From positions 1 through 64,000 of the IMG/VR virus record IMGVR_UViG_3300042455_001086: 64,000 bases of DNA; one strand, 5' to 3'. Shown piece after piece: positions 6,186 to 58,029 of this stretch. A program made the position numbers and the translations under genes. Position 1 is the first letter of the stretch. Every line of letters starts with the position of its first letter. Under the pieces are notes generated by a model. The model did no database searches and was not told the DNA's origin. It worked only from the letters and a program-made list of their open reading frames with translations.

Positions 6186-7886
6186 TTATATATTTAAATC
6201 CAAAACATATTTAAATAACCCACAATTCCATATTTTATCAAATCCAAGTTCTTCAGTTAATTGTGATTCAGATTTGGTGAAATCAAGGTTGGGATATTTT
6301 TTTTTCAAATTATTTTTACCCATAGAAAACTTATGAAATCTTTTGTATTTATTAATTTTTGAACTATAGTAATAGTAAGATGGTTTAACAACTGATGTAA
6401 GTTTAAATCCCAATTTTGTATATAAATTATTTTCTGAACTAATTGTCCATCTTCTATCAGCAAAACTAATAATTTGTTTTGGGTTATGTTCTTTTATAAA
6501 TTTTTTAAGGATTTTTGAAGCCAAACCATTGACAATAAATCCAGAATTTGTTGAATATCTGGACAATTCAAACTCACCGGTTTGTGTTTTGGTCATATTT
6601 CTTTTTCTATTAAAGGTCATGACACCAACCATTGTATCCCCATAAAATGCACCATAAAATATATCAGATTTATCATTTCCTTGTATATGGAAATCATTCA
6701 AAAAATTGGTTTTTTGTTCCTTAGTTATATTTTTTATTTTTACTTGTCTCGCCCCAATTTTTATCCCATCATTTTTATTTAGAATATGTTTGATTTTATT
6801 TTTGACAAGTTCTTTATTTTTAACCCATTCATCTTCATAAATGTGATATAGTTTATAACCCATAAGAAAACAATCAATTGTTTTATTTAAATGATATTTT
6901 GAGTCTTTACCCATCTTTTCGGTATTGTAATATAAACCATCATATTCAAAACAAATTTTTAAACTAGGAATTACCAAATCAATTTCTTTACCTTCCAATA
7001 TTTTTCTATTTTTACCCTTAACAACATCAAACCCCAAGGTCTCCAAAAATTCTTTAATTTCGGATTCACCTTTTGATGTCCAAGTTGGTTCCAATGTTTG
7101 ATTTAATATTTTTGTGGACTCACTTAATTTTTTTGAGGTTGTTTCAGATACGATTTTTGAATTTGGAAATTTCATTTTATACTCCTCAATATCCATATTG
7201 TGTTTGTTTTTCAAATGTGTGTTTGTTATTGATTTCATTTTTTCATTACAAATTTGACAAACAACAATATTTTCACTTTTATTTAACTCACTCTTCTTAA
7301 CAAGAGTTGGATGAAACTTATATTCCAATGGAAATTCATCAAGATATTCTTTAATTGTAATATTATGTGTTTTAATGATATGTTGCTCAAAACAACCGGT
7401 TTTGTTGTTTATATCAGTTGTTTCCCATTTACATAACGAACATTTTCTTATTTCTTTTTTTTCCTTCTTTATTATATCAAAATATTCTTCATACCATTTT
7501 TTACCATATTGTATTTCATATTTTTTTCTTTGGTAATTATTAATGGGTATATTAACATCACCATAGTTCTCAATTATATGTTTTGTTAATTTACCAGATA
7601 AATTGTTTGGATCATTTATAGTTATTTTTGTTTTTTTACAGACAGCAACAAATTCATATTCATCTGTTTCATATTTTTTTGTCTTTACAGATTCGATTTC
7701 TAAAGTTTGGAAATCTTTTACTTGACCTCTTTTTTTGTTAATTTTAATATTGTTATTTTTTAAAATTTGTGAAATTTTTTTATGTCCTACTTTAAATTTT
7801 TCTGCTAATTTATGAGTACTGGGAATTTGATTTTGATATAAAGAAATGATTTCCAAAATATCATCATTAGATAGGATTGTTTTCAT
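6186..7886 (-). CDS. Free-standing putative homing endonuclease (zinc fingers plus PD-(D/E)XK-like domain)
   Basis: C2H2-like CxxC..H motifs; SKGESEI...EIDL...FEYDGLYY; C-terminal ELSRY..SFADRRW..IWNCG domain. Lies behind the capsid-gene terminator. Start taken at MKTILS. Confidence 0.65.
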   Translation of the reverse strand: MKTILSNDDILEIISLYQNQIPSTHKLAEKFKVGHKKISQILKNNNIKINKKRGQVKDFQTLEIESVKTKKYETDEYEFVAVCKKTKITINDPNNLSGKLTKHIIENYGDVNIPINNYQRKKYEIQYGKKWYEEYFDIIKKEKKEIRKCSLCKWETTDINNKTGCFEQHIIKTHNITIKEYLDEFPLEYKFHPTLVKKSELNKSENIVVCQICNEKMKSITNTHLKNKHNMDIEEYKMKFPNSKIVSETTSKKLSESTKILNQTLEPTWTSKGESEIKEFLETLGFDVVKGKNRKILEGKEIDLVIPSLKICFEYDGLYYNTEKMGKDSKYHLNKTIDCFLMGYKLYHIYEDEWVKNKELVKNKIKHILNKNDGIKIGARQVKIKNITKEQKTNFLNDFHIQGNDKSDIFYGAFYGDTMVGVMTFNRKRNMTKTQTGEFELSRYSTNSGFIVNGLASKILKKFIKEHNPKQIISFADRRWTISSENNLYTKLGFKLTSVVKPSYYYYSSKINKYKRFHKFSMGKNNLKKKYPNLDFTKSESQLTEELGFDKIWNCGLFKYVLDLNI

Positions 7887-7940
7887 ATGTATAATTATAT
7901 AAAAAATAAATTTATAATCCATTCAATTTTACACCAAATA

Positions 7941-11777: not shown

Positions 11778-12563
11778 TTATTTATCAAGAAAAGATGAAA
11801 GTTTATCCATTAATTTTTTTGTCTTATCAAGACTTTCTTCTTCCATTCCGGAAATTCTCTGATTTCTAATTTTATTTTCTTCATCCAGATTCTCTTCAAA
11901 TTTGTGTCGATCACCCTTATCCAAAAATAAATAAGCACCAGGTGTTGATGGTGATGATACAAGGTCAAAACATATTAATTCAAAATCGTCTTGGACTTCA
12001 TTTTGTTCTCCAACTTTTTTTAAAGATCCCACACCACGAGAAGAAATACCCAAAGTAACCCCTTGTCTTAAATAATTGGCGGCCATATCCCCCTTTGTTG
12101 ATACAATTCCTCTTTCGTGAAAACCAGGTGAGGTAAGTAATTTTAATTTACCCAACAATACTGGTCCATCCCACCAAATATCAGTAATTATATGCGATAC
12201 TCTATCAAGGTCAATTAAAGAAGATTCTGGGTGATTAAGTTCGGAAAGTGATGTTCCCTTCTCAATCATTTTTTTATAATTGTCGGCTTCCCTTTTTAAT
12301 ATTTTTTCCGGATATACCCTTCCATTTCTATTTGGTGTGTTATATTTTTGTAAAACAGCGTAGAATTCAAATGGTTTTGAGTGGTCCAAAAATGATTTTG
12401 ACTCCATTATGAAATGGTTATTTTCACTCTTTGGGTTAATATAACCGGCGTCGTATTCGATAAGAATTAATTTTTTATTTAATTCGTTCTTTGTGTTTAT
12501 ATACATTTTTTTATTTAAATTTCCATTTATATCCACCAGCACTCTTTCGTTGATTATTTGCAC
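11778..12563 (-). CDS. Prohead protease (T4 gp21-like)
   Basis: NRNGRVYP, ELNHP, RVSH, LGISSRGVGS, FDLVSSPSTPGA. True start uncertain (possibly MYINTK). Confidence 0.93.
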   Translation of the reverse strand: MQIINERVLVDINGNLNKKMYINTKNELNKKLILIEYDAGYINPKSENNHFIMESKSFLDHSKPFEFYAVLQKYNTPNRNGRVYPEKILKREADNYKKMIEKGTSLSELNHPESSLIDLDRVSHIITDIWWDGPVLLGKLKLLTSPGFHERGIVSTKGDMAANYLRQGVTLGISSRGVGSLKKVGEQNEVQDDFELICFDLVSSPSTPGAYLFLDKGDRHKFEENLDEENKIRNQRISGMEEESLDKTKKLMDKLSSFLDK

Positions 12564-38523: not shown

Positions 38524-38914
38524 GGGGGTGTTTTTGGATTTGACAGGTATTGGCTGAGGAATAAGGGCATGTAGGGACTAAGTTAATCTCTTTAAAAACT
38601 GACTTGGAAAACAACTGGCAATGTGCTAAACAAAATGGAAACTCTTGGATTAGTAAGAGGTTCTGAAGTTACTGTAGCTTAAGATAAGTTCGGAAACGGG
38701 GGGTCGGCAGACATATAACCTAGCAACAGAAGTCGTAGTTTGATAGAGCACACCGGATGGCTCTCTAAATCCGATTCGGGACCATTGGTTGTTGATTTAC
38801 GATGGTGAAGAACAAATCAACTATTTTGGGATATTAGAAAATATCAACCTAAACATGTAGTCCTTATCTGACAGGATATTATGGACCGGAGTTCGACTCT
38901 CCGCACCTCCACCA
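38524..38914 (+). ncRNA. ssrA: tmRNA
   Basis: 5' GGGGGTG..GGATTTGAC; 3' T-arm CGGAGTTCGACTCTCCG and CACCTCCACCA with G3.U70; tag ORF 38617-38682; promoter and boxA upstream. Confidence 0.95.
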
Positions 38915-41910: not shown

Positions 41911-42765
41911 AAAAAGCCTGAGATTACAGCTTGGTTTGAGAACCTTTTGAAGGATTATTTTTTCCCTTCGTATCCACCATCTTTTGAATGGTATTTCTCA
42001 GTGACGGTTTTTTAGGTATACCACTCCTTTAGGTTTGAATTACTCTCATCTTACTTGACTCTTTCCGAGGATGCCTCCCCAGTTCGTCCTTGCGGGATTA
42101 AAGGTTTTTCGGATAATTACACATCGACTTGGGATCTTTGTGTGCAATGAACGGCTCATTACTATGTAGTCACCTTTCATCCAAACCTGACGGACACTTT
42201 TCCTTTCTGTAGTTAATAATAGAATCATTACTTTCCATAAAGTATTTGTGTTGTGGATTGTGAAAGTAGTGGTCCGTCAACCAAGCCAACCCATCTTTTG
42301 AACGGATCGATACTTAACTACTCTCTGAAATGTCCCCATTTCCATATTTTTAGACTACTTCAAAACAATTCCCTTGGTAAGGAATAATTAGGGTTGGTAA
42401 CAGCACCATCTGTACACGAACATACCTTTCGGTTTTAAGTATCCTATTATATTGGAACACGCAATAATAAAATTGGATAATTCTATTTTTTGCAATATTC
42501 CTACGAGTTATTCCTATTGGTGTTCCCACCTCAAACTGACAACCCACATTGCCAGTTCATCTAACCACTTTCCCTACAGCGTTGCCCTCGGTACTAAAGG
42601 TTAAACGGTATCCCGCTTGTGTACTCAAGTTCAGTTACCCAAACCGCAAACCATTTACACGAATGATTCACTTTATCCCACTTTCGTGGTTTATTTTATG
42701 GACTATACACGGCCCAATATCTTTATCAGTTTCATTTCTTACTCCTGAAAGGATAATCTAATTTT
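41911..42765 (-). ncRNA. Large (~850 nt) structured ncRNA, probably GOLLD-class
   Basis: No credible ORF; GC richer than its surroundings; TAACTTTG promoter at 42803-42810 and boxA at 42766-42775; many hairpins; 3' hairpin plus U-run. Size and tRNA-proximal phage context fit GOLLD. Family assignment not verified. Confidence 0.65.
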
Positions 42766-47079: not shown

Positions 47080-47088
47080 ATTGTTTTA

Positions 47089-47121
47089 CAAAGATATGTA
47101 TTTTATTTCAATCTACCAAAT
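47089..47121 (-). promoter_or_regulatory. Bacteroidota sigma70 promoter cassette (TTTG-N20-TATCTTTG); copies at 48455 and 48960, variants at 52485 and 54730
   Basis: caaagatatgtattttatttcaatctaccaaat is repeated. Other TAnnTTTG sites: 3199, 30721, 37403, 38489, 38966, 42803, 44273, 52858, 58447, 58861, 60671. Confidence 0.85.
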
Positions 47122-47331
47122 GTTTTTTTTAAAAATAAAAGGGGGAATTAAGGTGTTACCCCCTTTTTGTTTCTGTCGTTTGAAGTTTCGATTTTAGGTC
47201 TTGGAAACCCCATTCGGTAAAAAAAGAGACCGCAGTTTCTGGAAACTTACCTAACCCCAACATTTCTACCTTGTTACTTTAACGTCTCAACAATGGGACT
47301 CACTTGGGCGAGCATCAAAAAAGACGACCTG

Positions 47332-47417: not shown

Positions 47418-47424
47418 ATTTTTT

Positions 47425-47664
47425 TTACTTAGATAATTCAAATTGATAAACACAACTTTGAATTCCCAATTCATTCTTCACCAAATAATCGTGTCTTCCA
47501 GTTTCAATTATTGTGACAGATTCACCTGGTGTAAATCCGGTGTTTTCGGTGTAACAAAAATGAATCTTACACTTTTCACCGATCTTAAATCGTTGTTGGA
47601 TTGGTGTTGAATAACCCCAATTATCGTCAACCAATTTTAATAATTTCCAAAGTAACTTTTTCAT
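47425..47664 (-). CDS. Hypothetical protein
   Basis: ORF track; start taken at MKKLLW, downstream of the tRNA-like element. Confidence 0.5.
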   Translation of the reverse strand: MKKLLWKLLKLVDDNWGYSTPIQQRFKIGEKCKIHFCYTENTGFTPGESVTIIETGRHDYLVKNELGIQSCVYQFELSK

Positions 47665-47680
47665 AATTTTAATTTTTTCG

Positions 47681-47799
47681 TAGTCAGTCAAGGAATCGAA
47701 CCTGTATTCAACCCAATCTCGATGTTGGCATTGTTATTCCCAGCGTCTACCAATCACAGTCAATCCAATTGACATATATGGCTATTCCGCCACCTGACT
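47681..47799 (-). ncRNA. Leu-type tRNA shell with ~30-nt D-loop insertion
   Basis: GGCGGAAT[insert hairpin]TGGTAGACGC; T-loop GGTTCGATTCC. Confidence 0.55.
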
Positions 47800-47899
47800 A
47801 AAAATAAGATTGATTTAGTGGACATATATAATCCCGCCTTGAGCAATTCGTTTCCACTAAGCTTTGACTTTACGGGCTTAGCTTTAAATCAATCTATAC

Positions 47900-47990
47900 G
47901 AGGTTGAGGTCCTCTATGTTGTAAGTTGCCTACCATAAATGGTATCCTTTATCGTCTACTCAAGCAATTCCTTTCTCAAGGGAACAACAC
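47900..47990 (-). ncRNA. Structured RNA motif, copy 2
   Basis: See copy 1 at 45574. Confidence 0.6.
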
Positions 47991-48153
47991 AATAATGTTG
48001 ATAGTGTTGGTGTACCCGCCTATTTCCAATCTTAACTGCCTTTTTAAGTTTTATGGTGCACCGGCAGTGGGCCATATCTATCCTTAACCTACGTAGTTTG
48101 TCGACAACTTCCGTAGAGGCGATCACTATCAATTTTTTCAAAGAACTTTCTTT

Positions 48154-48362: not shown

Positions 48363-48648
48363 GTTTAAGATGAGTCGTGGACTTGTGTACCACTTGTCCC
48401 CCTTTAAGTTTCTCACTAACCCCGGATGTAGGGAAACTCACCTTATTTGTCTTACAAAGATATGTATTTTATTTCAATCTACCAAATCTTTTTTTAATTT
48501 TTGTTGAGGATTAATCCTAAATTTTTTCTTTAAGGCCCTTAATAAATCAGTTTTTATGTTAGTTTTAACAAATTTAACCCTTCCTGATTCACAAGTCCCT
48601 GATAAAACTTCCTTCATCATTCATTGTTTTTAATTGTTTATTTTTTGA

Positions 48649-48725
48649 ACTACCCATAGGACTCGAACCTACAACCTTCGGGCCGAAGTAGACCCGTGTG
48701 CAAACCAAATTTACACCATAAGTAG
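48649..48725 (-). ncRNA. tRNA-like RNA with an 8-nt anticodon loop
   Basis: CGGGT-CTACTTCG-GCCCG; intact D and T arms. Confidence 0.6.
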
Positions 48726-48819
48726 TTACGCAAGAAGACAGACAGGAATTAGTGTCGACAAATTTCCTTAGGCTATATGACCCATCTTCTTGTTAGGTTC
48801 GGTTAATTACTCCGAACTT

Positions 48820-48978: not shown

Positions 48979-49776
48979 TCAATCTACCAAATATTTCTTA
49001 TCCCAATCTTCAATTTTTTTCAAAAGTTCATCAATTGTGATGTCTGATTTTTTATTTTTAGATATATTATCATTATGAATCATCAATCTACAATTTGCGG
49101 GATGAGATATGATTTTTGGATCAATATTATTTTTAAATCCTTCATTTACAGAATAAATATGATCCCTACTTATTCCACCTAAATTGTTACCCCTATTTTT
49201 AGGTTTATACCAACCATATTTCTCAATAAGAGAAAATTCAAATTCACTTGGGAAGTCGGACAAATTAAAATTAAATTTAGAGTCTTGTTTGTATTTGCAA
49301 TATTCCGTCATCAAATGTCTCTCATGTATCCTTCTACATTCAACGCAACAGAATTTATTGTTTCGTTTTTTAAAATTTAATGGTATATCACAATTACTAC
49401 ATTTACTTGGGTTTAATTTATAGTCGTTATACTCATCCAAAATACCTAATCTTTTAAAATTAGATTGGATTATATTTTGTTTACCTTCTTCGGACATATT
49501 ATATTTAAGTCCTTTTTTGTTTACCTGATTTATTACAGATTTACTACATTCTTTGGAACAATATAAATTAAGTCTATTTTCATAATCTATAAAATTTTCG
49601 CATTTTTTACATTTTTTAGGATTTTGTAAATATTTTTCCCTTGAGTTTTTTTTTAAACTTTCTCCTACTTTAGTGTAGTCTCTTAAATTTTTATTTACAT
49701 ATATATTTCTACAAGTTAAAGAACAATATGTATTTTTTTCTTTAATATCTTTACCACAATTTTTACAATTTTTCAT
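48979..49776 (-). CDS. Zn-finger HNH homing endonuclease in the tRNA cluster
   Basis: CxxC..YCS..C repeats; SRDHIYSV..HPANC..N..K. Confidence 0.8.
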   Translation of the reverse strand: MKNCKNCGKDIKEKNTYCSLTCRNIYVNKNLRDYTKVGESLKKNSREKYLQNPKKCKKCENFIDYENRLNLYCSKECSKSVINQVNKKGLKYNMSEEGKQNIIQSNFKRLGILDEYNDYKLNPSKCSNCDIPLNFKKRNNKFCCVECRRIHERHLMTEYCKYKQDSKFNFNLSDFPSEFEFSLIEKYGWYKPKNRGNNLGGISRDHIYSVNEGFKNNIDPKIISHPANCRLMIHNDNISKNKKSDITIDELLKKIEDWDKKYLVD

Positions 49777-49828
49777 ATAAGTATTTATATATAAATATCT
49801 GAATTTGTGGAAAAAGTGAATAACGAAG

Positions 49829-49905
49829 TGGAGGAGGTGGGACTCGAACCCACATAAAACCCTCTCGTTGCAAACGAGCCGCTCAGCCAATTGAGCTACA
49901 CCCCC
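49829..49905 (-). tRNA. tRNA-Ala(UGC)
   Basis: G3.U70; CTCG-TTTGCAA-CGAG. Confidence 0.88.
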
Positions 49906-49911
49906 AAATTT

Positions 49912-50120
49912 CCCCCTCCTGAGATTACAGAGGAGTAGTTAATTCGGTTTTTTCTGTTTCAAAAACCTGCGGGGCATCCCCCATAAAAAAGTCAGTTCTT
50001 ACTTGGGGGTGGGAGAACTTTCCGACCTTATTCCCAATGAGTACTCCGTCACGTAGTAGTACCAGCTCCGTTAAGTTTTTATGAAGAAAACTTAAAAACT
50101 TCGGGCATCTCTTTCCCATT
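49912..50120 (-). ncRNA. ~200-nt structured RNA sharing its 3' motif with the large ncRNA
   Basis: 13-nt identity with 41917-41929; bounded by tRNA-Gly and tRNA-Ala. Confidence 0.5.
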
Positions 50121-50123
50121 TTG

Positions 50124-50194
50124 AGCGGGTAGAGAGAATCGAACTCTCGTCTTCAGATTGGAAGTCTGAAGTAATACCATTATACGATACCCGC
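50124..50194 (-). tRNA. tRNA-Gly(UCC)
   Basis: TCAGA-CTTCCAA-TCTGA. Confidence 0.93.
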
Positions 50195-50409
50195 AAGTTG
50201 TGACAACTTTGGGTTGGTTGTCACATTTACGTGAATGAGGGGATCAATCCTACTAACATCACGGGTATAAGTTCGTCACATCAAACTATTACCAAAAACA
50301 ACGTCAGTTTTTATCCGACAAAACTGATTAAACGACCTGATCTCTTGTTACCCCCCTTTTAAGTGCGTGAACTCCTTCTCAAGTTGAACTCTACTGTATA
50401 CACTCCCAG

Positions 50410-50488: not shown

Positions 50489-51115
50489 TTATTTTTTTCT
50501 TCTGTAAACCTCACCTTTATAGTGTTTATCAACAAATCTTTTTACTTGTGAATGTGTTAAACCTAAAATATCAGATACTTTTTTTACCCACCCATACGTT
50601 GTCATATCAACACCTTTAATTAAATCTAACCTTTCACTAACAATATCTTCAGTCAATTTATTAAAACCACCGAATTTATCACCCATTTTTTTTGCATTAT
50701 TAATTCTAAATTCTAAAGGTACCGATTCCCAAGTTTTTTTTCTTTTTTCTTTGTTATCCCACGAGCCGGCAATACTTCCATATTTTAATCCGTGTAACCG
50801 TCTTTTTTCTTCTGTCCAATAATTTTTATTTACATGATCAAAAGAACCTAAACCACCCAAAGAAATGTTATATGTGTTTTTATTAGTTACAAAACTTTCA
50901 TTAACTATTTCACTTTCCATCTGAAACATTTGTGTTGGGTTGTCGAATATTGCTAAATATTTTTTATCAAAGTTATTAATCCCGTATTTTTTAATAGCAT
51001 CTTTTATGTTTTTTCCAGAACCCATATACCCATCGTTAATATTATCAGTTTTATGTACACCAACATAAATCTTACCATTAACTTTATTTCTTATTTCATA
51101 AACTATGTATTTCAT
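50489..51115 (-). CDS. GIY-YIG homing endonuclease (Seg-like)
   Basis: YIVYEIRNKVNGKIYVGVH...YMGSG...E...YNISLGG. Confidence 0.88.
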   Translation of the reverse strand: MKYIVYEIRNKVNGKIYVGVHKTDNINDGYMGSGKNIKDAIKKYGINNFDKKYLAIFDNPTQMFQMESEIVNESFVTNKNTYNISLGGLGSFDHVNKNYWTEEKRRLHGLKYGSIAGSWDNKEKRKKTWESVPLEFRINNAKKMGDKFGGFNKLTEDIVSERLDLIKGVDMTTYGWVKKVSDILGLTHSQVKRFVDKHYKGEVYRRKK

Positions 51116-51378: not shown

Positions 51379-52062
51379 ATGAAAACACTATTCACAGAAG
51401 AAGAATATAAAAATTCAAAATCAACATCTAAATTACCTTGTGAATGTTTACTATGTAAAAAATCATTTCTTGTTGAAAAAAAACTAATAACTTATGAATT
51501 AAAAAATAATCGTAATCGTCATATCTATTGTTCTACCGAATGTTATTATAATGCTCAAAAAGTATTACCAATAATTTTTAAATGTAAAAATTGTAATTGT
51601 GAGTTTGACAGAAAAGAATCCTCAAATAAAAAAGATTCTTCTGGTAACTATTTTTGTTCTCAATCGTGTTCGACCACATTTAATAATAAAAACAAAACAC
51701 ACGGAAATCGACGCTCTAAACTTGAAATTTGGTTGGAGGACCAATTAAAAGTTATTTATCCCAACCTTCCAATCGACTTTAATAAAAAAGAAGTTATCGG
51801 TTCTGAATTAGACATTTATTTCCCAACACTTAATTTTGCAGTAGAATTAAATGGTATTTTTCATTATGAACCTATCTATGGTATAGATAAGTTAAATAAA
51901 ATCCAAGAAAACGACCAATCTAAAACTAAACTTTGTCACGATTTAAAAATAGACCTCTGTATTATTGATGTTTCGGAACAAAAATATGTCAAACCCTCAA
52001 CATCAAAAAAATACCTTGATATTATCACCAATATTGTCAATGAACGTTTGTTAATCTCTTAG
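51379..52062 (+). CDS. Zn-finger PD-(D/E)XK endonuclease, antisense to the tRNA operon
   Basis: CxxC/FCS..C; RSKLE..ELDIY..AVELNGIFH. Confidence 0.75.
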   Translation: MKTLFTEEEYKNSKSTSKLPCECLLCKKSFLVEKKLITYELKNNRNRHIYCSTECYYNAQKVLPIIFKCKNCNCEFDRKESSNKKDSSGNYFCSQSCSTTFNNKNKTHGNRRSKLEIWLEDQLKVIYPNLPIDFNKKEVIGSELDIYFPTLNFAVELNGIFHYEPIYGIDKLNKIQENDQSKTKLCHDLKIDLCIIDVSEQKYVKPSTSKKYLDIITNIVNERLLIS

Positions 52063-52118
52063 CCGGCTTTACCCGTTTCCAACAATCACCTCGTGGCGGT
52101 GGATTAACTCCGATTGTT

Positions 52119-52190
52119 TAGCGTGTTGTGGACTCGAACCACCCCGTAGACGTTATGAGCGTCCCATGCAACCAATTACACCTTCACGCG
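52119..52190 (-). tRNA. tRNA-Met(CAU), initiator-like
   Basis: C1xU72 mismatch; GGACG-CTCATAA-CGTCT; lacks the three consecutive G-C pairs. Confidence 0.75.
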
Positions 52191-52195
52191 ATATG

Positions 52196-52302
52196 TAGTC
52201 AAAGAAGGATTCGAACCTATCACGAGATAAGTGTGAAATTCACCTTATCCCAAGGACTTTTGAGTATTGTGTCCCAGCGTCTACCAATTCCGCCACTTGA
52301 CT
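52196..52302 (-). ncRNA. Leu(CAA)-like tRNA with a 13-nt anticodon loop and extended V-arm
   Basis: GGGAC-ACAATACTCAAAA-GTCCT. Confidence 0.6.
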
Positions 52303-52525: not shown

Positions 52526-52817
52526 TACTTGGAGCGGGAATCGAACCCGCACGGGCAAATGCCCACAGGATTTTCTTACCACTATAGTTTTCACTACCAA
52601 CCAAATTGTTGTTTGTGGTCTGGACTATACCTTAACCTTATCTTTTTAGACTTAGGTTCTCCGTGTCTAGTCTCTACACCTTACTCATTTCTGAGTCTTG
52701 GCTCGGTATTCCCATTTTAAAAGGTTCACCGAATTTACGGAGTTCTACTCAGAGGGTTTCCACTCTGGCACTCAAATTATATAAGTCCGGCGTGTCTACC
52801 TATTCCACCACCCAAGC
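52526..52817 (-). tRNA. tRNA-Leu(UAA) interrupted by a group I intron
   Basis: Exon 1 ends GGACTT and exon 2 begins AAAATCC; long V-arm. Confidence 0.92.
52575..52782 (-). mobile_element. Group I intron (IC3-like, 208 nt) at U^AA
   Basis: AAATTCGGTGAA (P), AATACCGAGC (Q), GTAGAGACTAGAC (R), GTATAGTCC (S), terminal G. Confidence 0.92.
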
Positions 52818-57943: not shown

Positions 57944-58029
57944 AGGAAGCCTGAGGTGTCGATCCCCATACCGGTCAAGGTACCGCCCGTTTTCAAGACG
58001 GGGTTGCAGACCGCTGCAATTAGACTTCC
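57944..58029 (-). tRNA. tRNA-Ser(UGA), SelC-like 8/4 fold
   Basis: 8-bp acceptor; 6-bp D-stem with CGGT loop; CCCGT-CTTGAAA-ACGGG. Confidence 0.82.

Follow-up and report, generated by a model that had tools for sequence, protein, structure and literature searches.

A structured RNA family with two predicted pseudoknots in the tRNA gene arrays of large uncultivated phages

The window analysed here is the first 64 kb (64,000 nt) of a 257-kb IMG/VR contig, 3300042455_001086, and its coordinates are those of the contig. It belongs to an uncultivated phage that encodes a T4-type major head protein and a terminase, and whose capsid protein has only ~45% identity to that of the nearest relatives in GenBank. 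ARAGORN identifies 24 tRNA genes on the minus strand of the window, and Rfam places the 3' domain of GOLLD at 41915-42325 (-), with 321.6 bits. The phage also carries a tmRNA of its own at 38524-38914 (+; 110.2 bits), ~3 kb from GOLLD, as does one related locus (L056, 374-755), and a tmRNA-like fragment of 17 nt lies at 52534-52550. Most tRNAs of these arrays are spaced by a few nucleotides only. A spacer of 217 nt, 49906-50122 (-), separates tRNA-Gly(UCC), directly upstream at 50123-50194 (-) (Rfam tRNA, 68.9 bits), from tRNA-Ala(UGC), directly downstream at 49828-49905 (-) (52.8 bits); ARAGORN and Rfam both identify these tRNAs, bearing out the location given in the original prediction. The whole spacer is the RNA considered below, and its position i is window coordinate 50123 - i. 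Homing-endonuclease genes of the HNH-like and GIY-YIG types surround the tRNAs and the spacer RNA (48979-49776 (-), 50489-51115 (-) and 51379-52062 (+)), a placement that parallels segB in the T4 tRNA cluster, and another, 6186-7922 (-), adjoins the major head gene.

Searching IMG/VR with the translation of a 64-codon ORF in the spacer gave a first relative, with 81.7% DNA identity. Blocks conserved between it and the window copy were converted into gapped patterns, which retrieved a large family; altogether, relatives were collected by four independent gapped pattern scans and one translated search. The first gapped pattern, built from the two motifs of the original prediction, had yielded 40 loci, comprising 39 chance matches in coding DNA and the source contig. 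nhmmer gives 145 matches, distributed over 133 viral loci that each have one full-length copy; the unique full-length viral members number 83 and measure 201-225 nt. In one metagenome scan, 86 of 90 loci, from freshwater, activated-sludge and marine assemblies, match the family model. The homologue collection called for in the original prediction has thus returned 137 unique sequences, viral and metagenomic, all from uncultivated phage and metagenome contigs. It is important to note that collection by exact patterns imposes part of the apparent invariance of GGGGAUGCCC, GUAAUCUCA and ACUACUC; each pattern left other blocks free, and all gave the same picture. The window copy, the sole copy in the window, scores 163.6 bits (E 7.5e-40, model positions 1-223) against the family covariance model, R1, a score that is partly circular because this copy is among the 52 training sequences. 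With nhmmer it gives E 3.6e-41, using a profile from 26 sequences, the window copy included.

Catalogued sequences offered no relative of this RNA. A blastn comparison with 50,697 GenBank phages picked up the T4-like tRNA-Gly alone and no relative of the RNA itself, and a typical family member had no match in the GenBank phages. The exact family pattern was absent from 185,579 bacterial and archaeal genomes. No Rfam 15 family (of 4227) matched the window copy or a typical member, at gathering thresholds or at E up to 10, nor did any match the new RNA in 13 whole family loci. A literature search found no description of an RNA of this kind.

A structure was proposed on a MAFFT alignment of 52 viral sequences (A2). 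Covariation in two separately collected sets supports a predicted fold of five hairpins and two H-type pseudoknots. In the viral set (n=52), 92.8% of cells are paired; shuffles give 82.2%, and sliding the partners leaves no more than 55.7%. Of the 49 pairs, 28 show changes on both sides, and the covariation score is 0.303 against 0.127 (0 of 500 shuffles). In the metagenome set (72 distinct sequences) the corresponding figures are 89.8% paired against 74.9% in shuffles, compensatory changes in 24 of 37 pairs, and a score of 0.356 against 0.124, bearing in mind that alignments A3 and A4, the metagenome alignment included, were fitted to the model and are biased in its favour. The window copy can form all of the helices, both pseudoknots and a GAGAU/AUCUC pair between loops. 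Its sole non-pair is a C-C in stem B, a position that is canonical in 21 of 52 members and unpaired in many others. Folding of the window copy as a single sequence was no better than that of its shuffles (z = -0.56).

Following the RNA from its 5' end, all elements being on the minus strand, the P1 hairpin (GGG/CCC, 50103-50117) has the loop AAAGAGAUG and compensatory changes in all four pairs; GAGAU within this loop (50107-50111) is the predicted partner of the 3'-terminal loop. The P2 hairpin (GAAG/CUUC) and the first pseudoknot occupy 50071-50102, the P2 loop UUAAGUUUU being predicted to pair with the downstream AAAACUUAA. Each of the five homologous pairs of this pseudoknot shows covariation in the viral set (up to five pair types) and again in the metagenome set (up to four), and the P2 stem itself occurs in subfamily B as GAAG/CUUC, AGGG/CCCU, GAG/CUC or AUG/CAU. 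P4 (GGUACU/AGUACU, 50040-50063) is a variable hairpin, all seven pairs of which have both-side changes in the family; an insertion of ~50 nt in the P4 region of L072, L051, L096 and L127 gives copies of ~265 nt. Stem A (UUGGG/CCCAA) and, nested with it, stem B (GGUCGG/CCCACC, with the one C-C mismatch) lie in 49994-50037, and both covary. The same region holds a conserved GUA (50000-50002) and the second pseudoknot, in which AGUUCU in the stem B loop would pair with AGAACU in the segment after GUA. When partners were swapped among sequences, the mean helix of this pseudoknot was 4.14 +/- 0.12 bp, against 5.21 bp with each sequence's own partner, and the maximum in 500 permutations was 4.54.

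The 3' half begins with P6 (GGGG/CCCC, 49971-49982), which has a GAUG tetraloop, replaced in subfamily B by a GUAAGA loop; of the pairs counted, the outermost is always formed (100%), by G-C in 38 sequences and by A-U in 14. In P7 (GGUUUUU/AAAAACC, 49946-49967) 91% of cells are paired, and covariation is weak because the sequence is mostly conserved, both-side changes being found in two pairs in the metagenome set. P8 (CUCCUC/GAGGGG, 49913-49935) is the 3'-terminal hairpin and the element in common with GOLLD; its loop is UGUAAUCUCAG, with the core AUCUC at 49921-49925, and its stem covaries, with both-side changes in three of six pairs in the viral set and five of six in the metagenome set. 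A half-copy consisting of the 3' half only, P6-P7-P8, is found at L044 8634-8719, and likewise in L042, L139 and L157, where it is fused behind a non-canonical tRNA-like gene and has an intrinsic terminator after it.

The comparative data support base pairing of the AUCUC core of the P8 loop with GAGAU in the P1 loop. Of the 125 unique sequences that could be scored, 95 show GAGAU/AUCUC, 13 retain a G-U pair after A-to-G changes in P1, and eight contain one or two mismatches. The P8 core is changed in nine, and all nine carry a matching change in P1: GAAGU/ACUUC (4), GAAGU/AUUUC (1), GUGAU/AUCAC (1) and AAGAC/GUCUC (3), the last of which re-registers as AGACA/UGUCU. Given that these variants come from few lineages, the matching changes amount to about four independent compensatory events in support of the pairing. 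In the half-copy, which lacks the 5' half and with it P1, the terminal loop has drifted to GUUAUCUUUAA, and the AUCUC core is absent.

There are two possible arrangements for this predicted contact. The first is that it ties together the two ends of one molecule, while the second is that it joins copies head to tail. In the second case, copies would chain into rings, cages or filaments in the manner of larger phage RNAs of tRNA arrays, an outcome we hold to be a lesser possibility but one to be taken seriously. The covariation fits cis and trans pairing alike, and the complementary loops are at opposite ends of the chain. Moreover, the L20-J13/15 kissing loop of GOLLD, for which covariation had been the basis of the prediction, turned out to bridge separate molecules (PMC12286853); the 3' domain of GOLLD assembles into decamers by itself (PMC12990946); and natural RNAs of <200 nt are reported to form cages, trimers and filaments (2026 preprint, 10.64898/2026.07.01.735769). 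However, the same loop in GOLLD, L27, is in the solved structure an intramolecular hub that pairs with P23 and J24/26 (PMC12286853), and single RNAs are commonly compacted by a contact that closes their 5' and 3' ends. A contact between molecules could give rings or cages that are kin to the GOLLD and ROOL nanocages by kind and not by descent, and GAGAU could in addition dock on GOLLD; for this fuller version we see a slimmer chance. If true, the small RNA docked on GOLLD could be its cargo, its cap or a regulator of its assembly.

The original prediction had presented the spacer as a miniature relative of the giant RNA, here identified as GOLLD, and as its possible minimal core or partner. 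Its starting point was a 13-mer, CTGTAATCTCAGG, and this part of the claim is sound: even with one mismatch allowed, the 13-mer occurs in the window only at 49918-49930 and 41917-41929, both (-), which are in the spacer RNA and at the extreme 3' end of GOLLD. That CUGUAAUCUCAGG is shared is beyond chance, with no match in any of 100 shuffles when one mismatch was allowed. In GOLLD it falls in the last hairpin of the Rfam model, where the loop consensus is GUAaUCUCA. The hairpins are also, as claimed, equivalent 3'-terminal elements with different stems, CCUC/GAGG in the spacer and AGC/GCU in GOLLD. All 52 aligned family sequences have AAUCUC in this loop, and in 51 of them an A comes next. Relatives thus keep the L27-like loop, and the objection anticipated in the original prediction, that the shared motifs might not be conserved in related phages, does not apply to this motif.

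The second shared motif fared differently. The 9-mer CAAGTAAGA is at chance level, with three occurrences in the window against 0.56 expected and three or more in 3 of 100 shuffles. It lies in the 49994-50037 region (CAAGUAAGA) and is not kept across the family: because it covers the 3' strand of a helix, the conserved GUA and a strand of the covarying pseudoknot, it is retained in one subfamily only. A third collinear 9-mer common to the spacer and GOLLD, AAAAAACCG, was likewise discarded as chance (four found, 2.07 expected), as was a resemblance seen by eye, hairpin-ACCG-N-UGAC, which is due to chance or undetectable by model. The two RNAs have 18 8-mers in common, where shuffles average 6.4 and 8 in 1000 reach 18; six of these are inside the 13-mer, and the excess is modest and owes much to it.

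Covariance models gave the same answer in both directions. The Rfam GOLLD model (RF02032, gathering score 150 bits, which the spacer RNA does not reach) finds nothing in 49900-50125 at E up to 10 with lax filters, and the 3'-domain model search that had been suggested gave no local GOLLD match in the spacer. Conversely, R1 run without filters on the GOLLD locus aligns only its model positions 196-212, a terminal hairpin of 17 nt, with 9.5 bits and E 0.013. This match is P27/L27, the terminal hairpin of GOLLD at 41915-41931 (-) and the sole part of GOLLD that resembles the small RNA. The architecture of the GOLLD 3' domain (P14-P27) is absent from the small RNA, the helices and two pseudoknots being without counterpart. 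At the level of sequence and of structure models, there is no detectable homology to GOLLD beyond the terminal hairpin, and the notion of a minimal core does not survive. Since one hairpin loop alone is common to both, we regard the small RNA as a new class and not as a shrunken GOLLD.

What the two RNAs have in common is nonetheless specific. GOLLD occupies the same phage tRNA-array setting, on the tRNA strand, and the 13-mer and both consensus loops place the same conserved 9-nt loop, GUAAUCUCA (L27), in its 3'-terminal hairpin; in both RNAs the loop makes, or is predicted to make, long-range base pairs that organise the fold. The partners of the loop differ, being P23 and J24/26 in GOLLD and the first hairpin loop in the small RNA. 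So does size: GOLLD is often >800 nt long, with separate 5' and 3' domains, and measures ~880 nt here, whereas the small RNA has 217 nt (201-225 nt in the family). Sharing of a 9-nt loop at the 3' terminus by two RNAs of tRNA arrays is unlikely to be chance, and the loop may be a reusable tertiary module, a site for a shared partner, or the result of an old exchange of hairpins.

Kinship with GOLLD, or a dedicated partnership in which the small RNA would dock on it by way of the shared loop, has some points in its favour. The 13-mer is identical in equivalent hairpins, the 9-nt loop is conserved in both families, and tRNA arrays of phages are home to both RNAs. At least nine contigs, the window's and eight or more others, carry the two together, and the GAGAU of the small RNA is complementary both to the P8 loop of that RNA and to L27 of GOLLD. 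On the other side, model searches in both directions show nothing beyond 17 nt, the helix architecture is different, and the second shared motif is not conserved. A copy of the small RNA lies near GOLLD at only 4 of 100 among the GOLLD loci listed (965 kb), GOLLD lies in the fetched flanks of none of 13 family loci, and L27 is buried as an intramolecular hub in the solved GOLLD structure (PMC12286853). We judge both versions of this idea improbable.

Members of the family reside in arrays of tRNA genes, in large uncultivated phages sampled from fresh water, the sea and sludge. All 130 tRNAs found within 300 nt of the 83 unique viral members are on the strand of the RNA. A downstream tRNA starts within 25 nt in 49 of the 83, representing 11 identities, and a called tRNA ends within 25 nt upstream in 30, representing 10 identities; in 64 members a T-loop-like motif lies within 45 nt upstream. 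The window copy conforms, being in a tRNA array, on the tRNA strand and abutted by tRNAs on both sides, while a few copies finish at a terminator and not at a tRNA (L093, for example). Release by tRNA processing, as proposed in the original prediction, is plausible in view of the abutting tRNAs in the window, the close downstream tRNAs in 49 of 83 members and the uniform strand. Around the window copy no promoter or terminator signal stands above chance. No neighbouring protein gene is conserved, the largest cluster occurring in 16 of 115 non-redundant loci and consisting mostly of homing endonucleases and small ORFs.

A number of unusual tRNA-like genes were seen in these arrays. In several related phages a non-canonical one stands directly before the family copy (L044 8554-8632, L093 ~12065-12145 and L056 9351-9457); these have a normal T arm and either an anticodon loop of 11-13 nt or a long insertion, and Rfam tRNA scores of 33-44 bits, and are missed by ARAGORN. 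In the closest relative (L044, 1538-1766 and 2157-2234), a truncated tRNA-Gly stands upstream of the family copy, after which comes an insertion of ~200 nt that adjoins this tRNA, and the phage has a suppressor-type tRNA with anticodon CUA, labelled tRNA-Pyl by ARAGORN. The window itself contains an odd tRNA-like pair, 48647-48726 (-) and 57945-58029 (-), for which ARAGORN gives a four-base anticodon (actt) and Rfam a selenocysteine-tRNA-like match of 46.6 bits, where gathering is 47.

The array setting is also compatible with a cis-acting role, in which the spacer would be a structured part of the tRNA precursor that orders or enhances processing of the tRNAs on either side and is functionless after release. 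Such a role would suit an element that is placed between tRNAs of the same strand, often 5-7 nt from the next one, and for which no promoter or terminator of its own stands out. However, the identities of the flanking tRNAs vary freely (11 downstream, 10 upstream), some copies finish at a terminator (L093), and the tRNAs of the same arrays are mostly a few nucleotides apart. Furthermore, a spacer would need far less than a pair of pseudoknots, a contact between distant loops and numerous unpaired bases that never vary. We are therefore very doubtful of a purely cis-acting spacer. As for a small protein gene, the ATG-initiated 64-codon ORF (49925-50119 (-)) does cover nearly the whole spacer, yet the comparative data refute a coding function, which we put at next to nil: the ORF lacks a Shine-Dalgarno sequence because its ATG is 3 nt after the tRNA, it has no PHROG match, its closest relative has three in-frame stops and a "protein" identity of 46% at 81.7% DNA identity, a sense ORF of at least 50 aa exists in only 2 of 72 members, and substitutions track base pairing and not codon position.

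Our preferred interpretation, which we consider likely, is that 49906-50122 (-) is one copy of an uncatalogued family of structured RNAs of ~215 nt that are processed from tRNA transcripts, stable and trans-acting. Judging from its context, the RNA would be transcribed together with the tRNAs as part of a tRNA precursor. Its 3' end would be created where RNase P matures the 5' end of tRNA-Ala downstream, and its 5' end by 3'-end processing of tRNA-Gly upstream. The species 1 and 2 RNAs of T4 are held to be released by tRNA-processing enzymes. Once free, the stable and compactly folded RNA would act in trans during infection, apparently with no dedicated phage protein partner encoded nearby; our best guess is that its action is probably linked to the tRNA and translation programme of the phage.

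RNAs already known from phage tRNA arrays include GOLLD, ROOL and the T4 species 1 and 2 RNAs, all large and of unknown function. What is new here is a compact, abundant and strongly constrained class, absent from Rfam 15, in phages of lakes, the sea and sludge, in which two predicted pseudoknots and a covarying long-range loop contact are contained within ~215 nt. An RNA this short is amenable to probing, mutagenesis, crystallography and cryo-EM, offering a small handle on the GOLLD problem and a direct test of self-assembly by small tRNA-array RNAs.

Other spacers of the arrays are conserved as well. One tRNA upstream lies the 214-nt spacer 50195-50408 (-), from tRNA-Ile to tRNA-Gly; at least 12 fetched loci, among them L293 3316-3506, L064 9167-9380 and L062 5404-5620, conserve it over its full length at 75-87% identity. 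RNAalifold (n=9) predicts several hairpins, some of them bearing compensatory changes, and there is no Rfam match; we consider this spacer a candidate second RNA family of the same arrays. Given this further conserved and structured spacer, these tRNA arrays, largely unread so far, may prove rich in new RNAs. Within spacer 47080-47330 (-), positions 1-191 are conserved in L095, L142 and L068, and the last ~50 nt are a short element repeated many times in many loci; positions 11-190 of spacer 47418-48153 (-) are conserved in L044, L284 and L170. A weak HDV-like ribozyme match (RF02682) at 52050-52118 (-), with 29.4 bits (gathering 44) and E 0.048, adjoins two sub-threshold tRNA-like matches at 52119-52302.

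Among known systems other than GOLLD, ROOL is an RNA of phages and prophages that occurs close to tRNA islands, contains several pseudoknots and kissing loops and has no known protein partner (PMC12286853). It resembles the new RNA as a pseudoknotted phage RNA of tRNA islands and differs in its size of ~580 nt; no Rfam match to ROOL is found in the new RNA at any threshold. The manA and EGFOA motifs (10.64898/2026.07.01.735769) are similar in being natural structured RNAs of ~200 nt or less that form compact interaction modules. The new RNA has no match to their Rfam families and is hence unrelated to them in sequence and structure; assembly is for it only a candidate property. Homology to the T4 species 1 and 2 RNAs (rnaC and rnaD), whose function is still unknown (PMC9697503), was considered and rejected: R1 has no match in the T4 tRNA cluster, rnaD and rnaC included, at E up to 10. 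The T4 RNAs also differ in size (139 and 119 nt), and rnaC ends in a tRNA-like T arm, which the new RNA lacks. They are, however, small stable RNAs, as ours is a candidate to be, that likewise lie in the tRNA cluster of a phage with a T4-type capsid, beside homing-endonuclease genes, and by analogy rnaC and rnaD are the closest counterparts in kind to the RNA described here.
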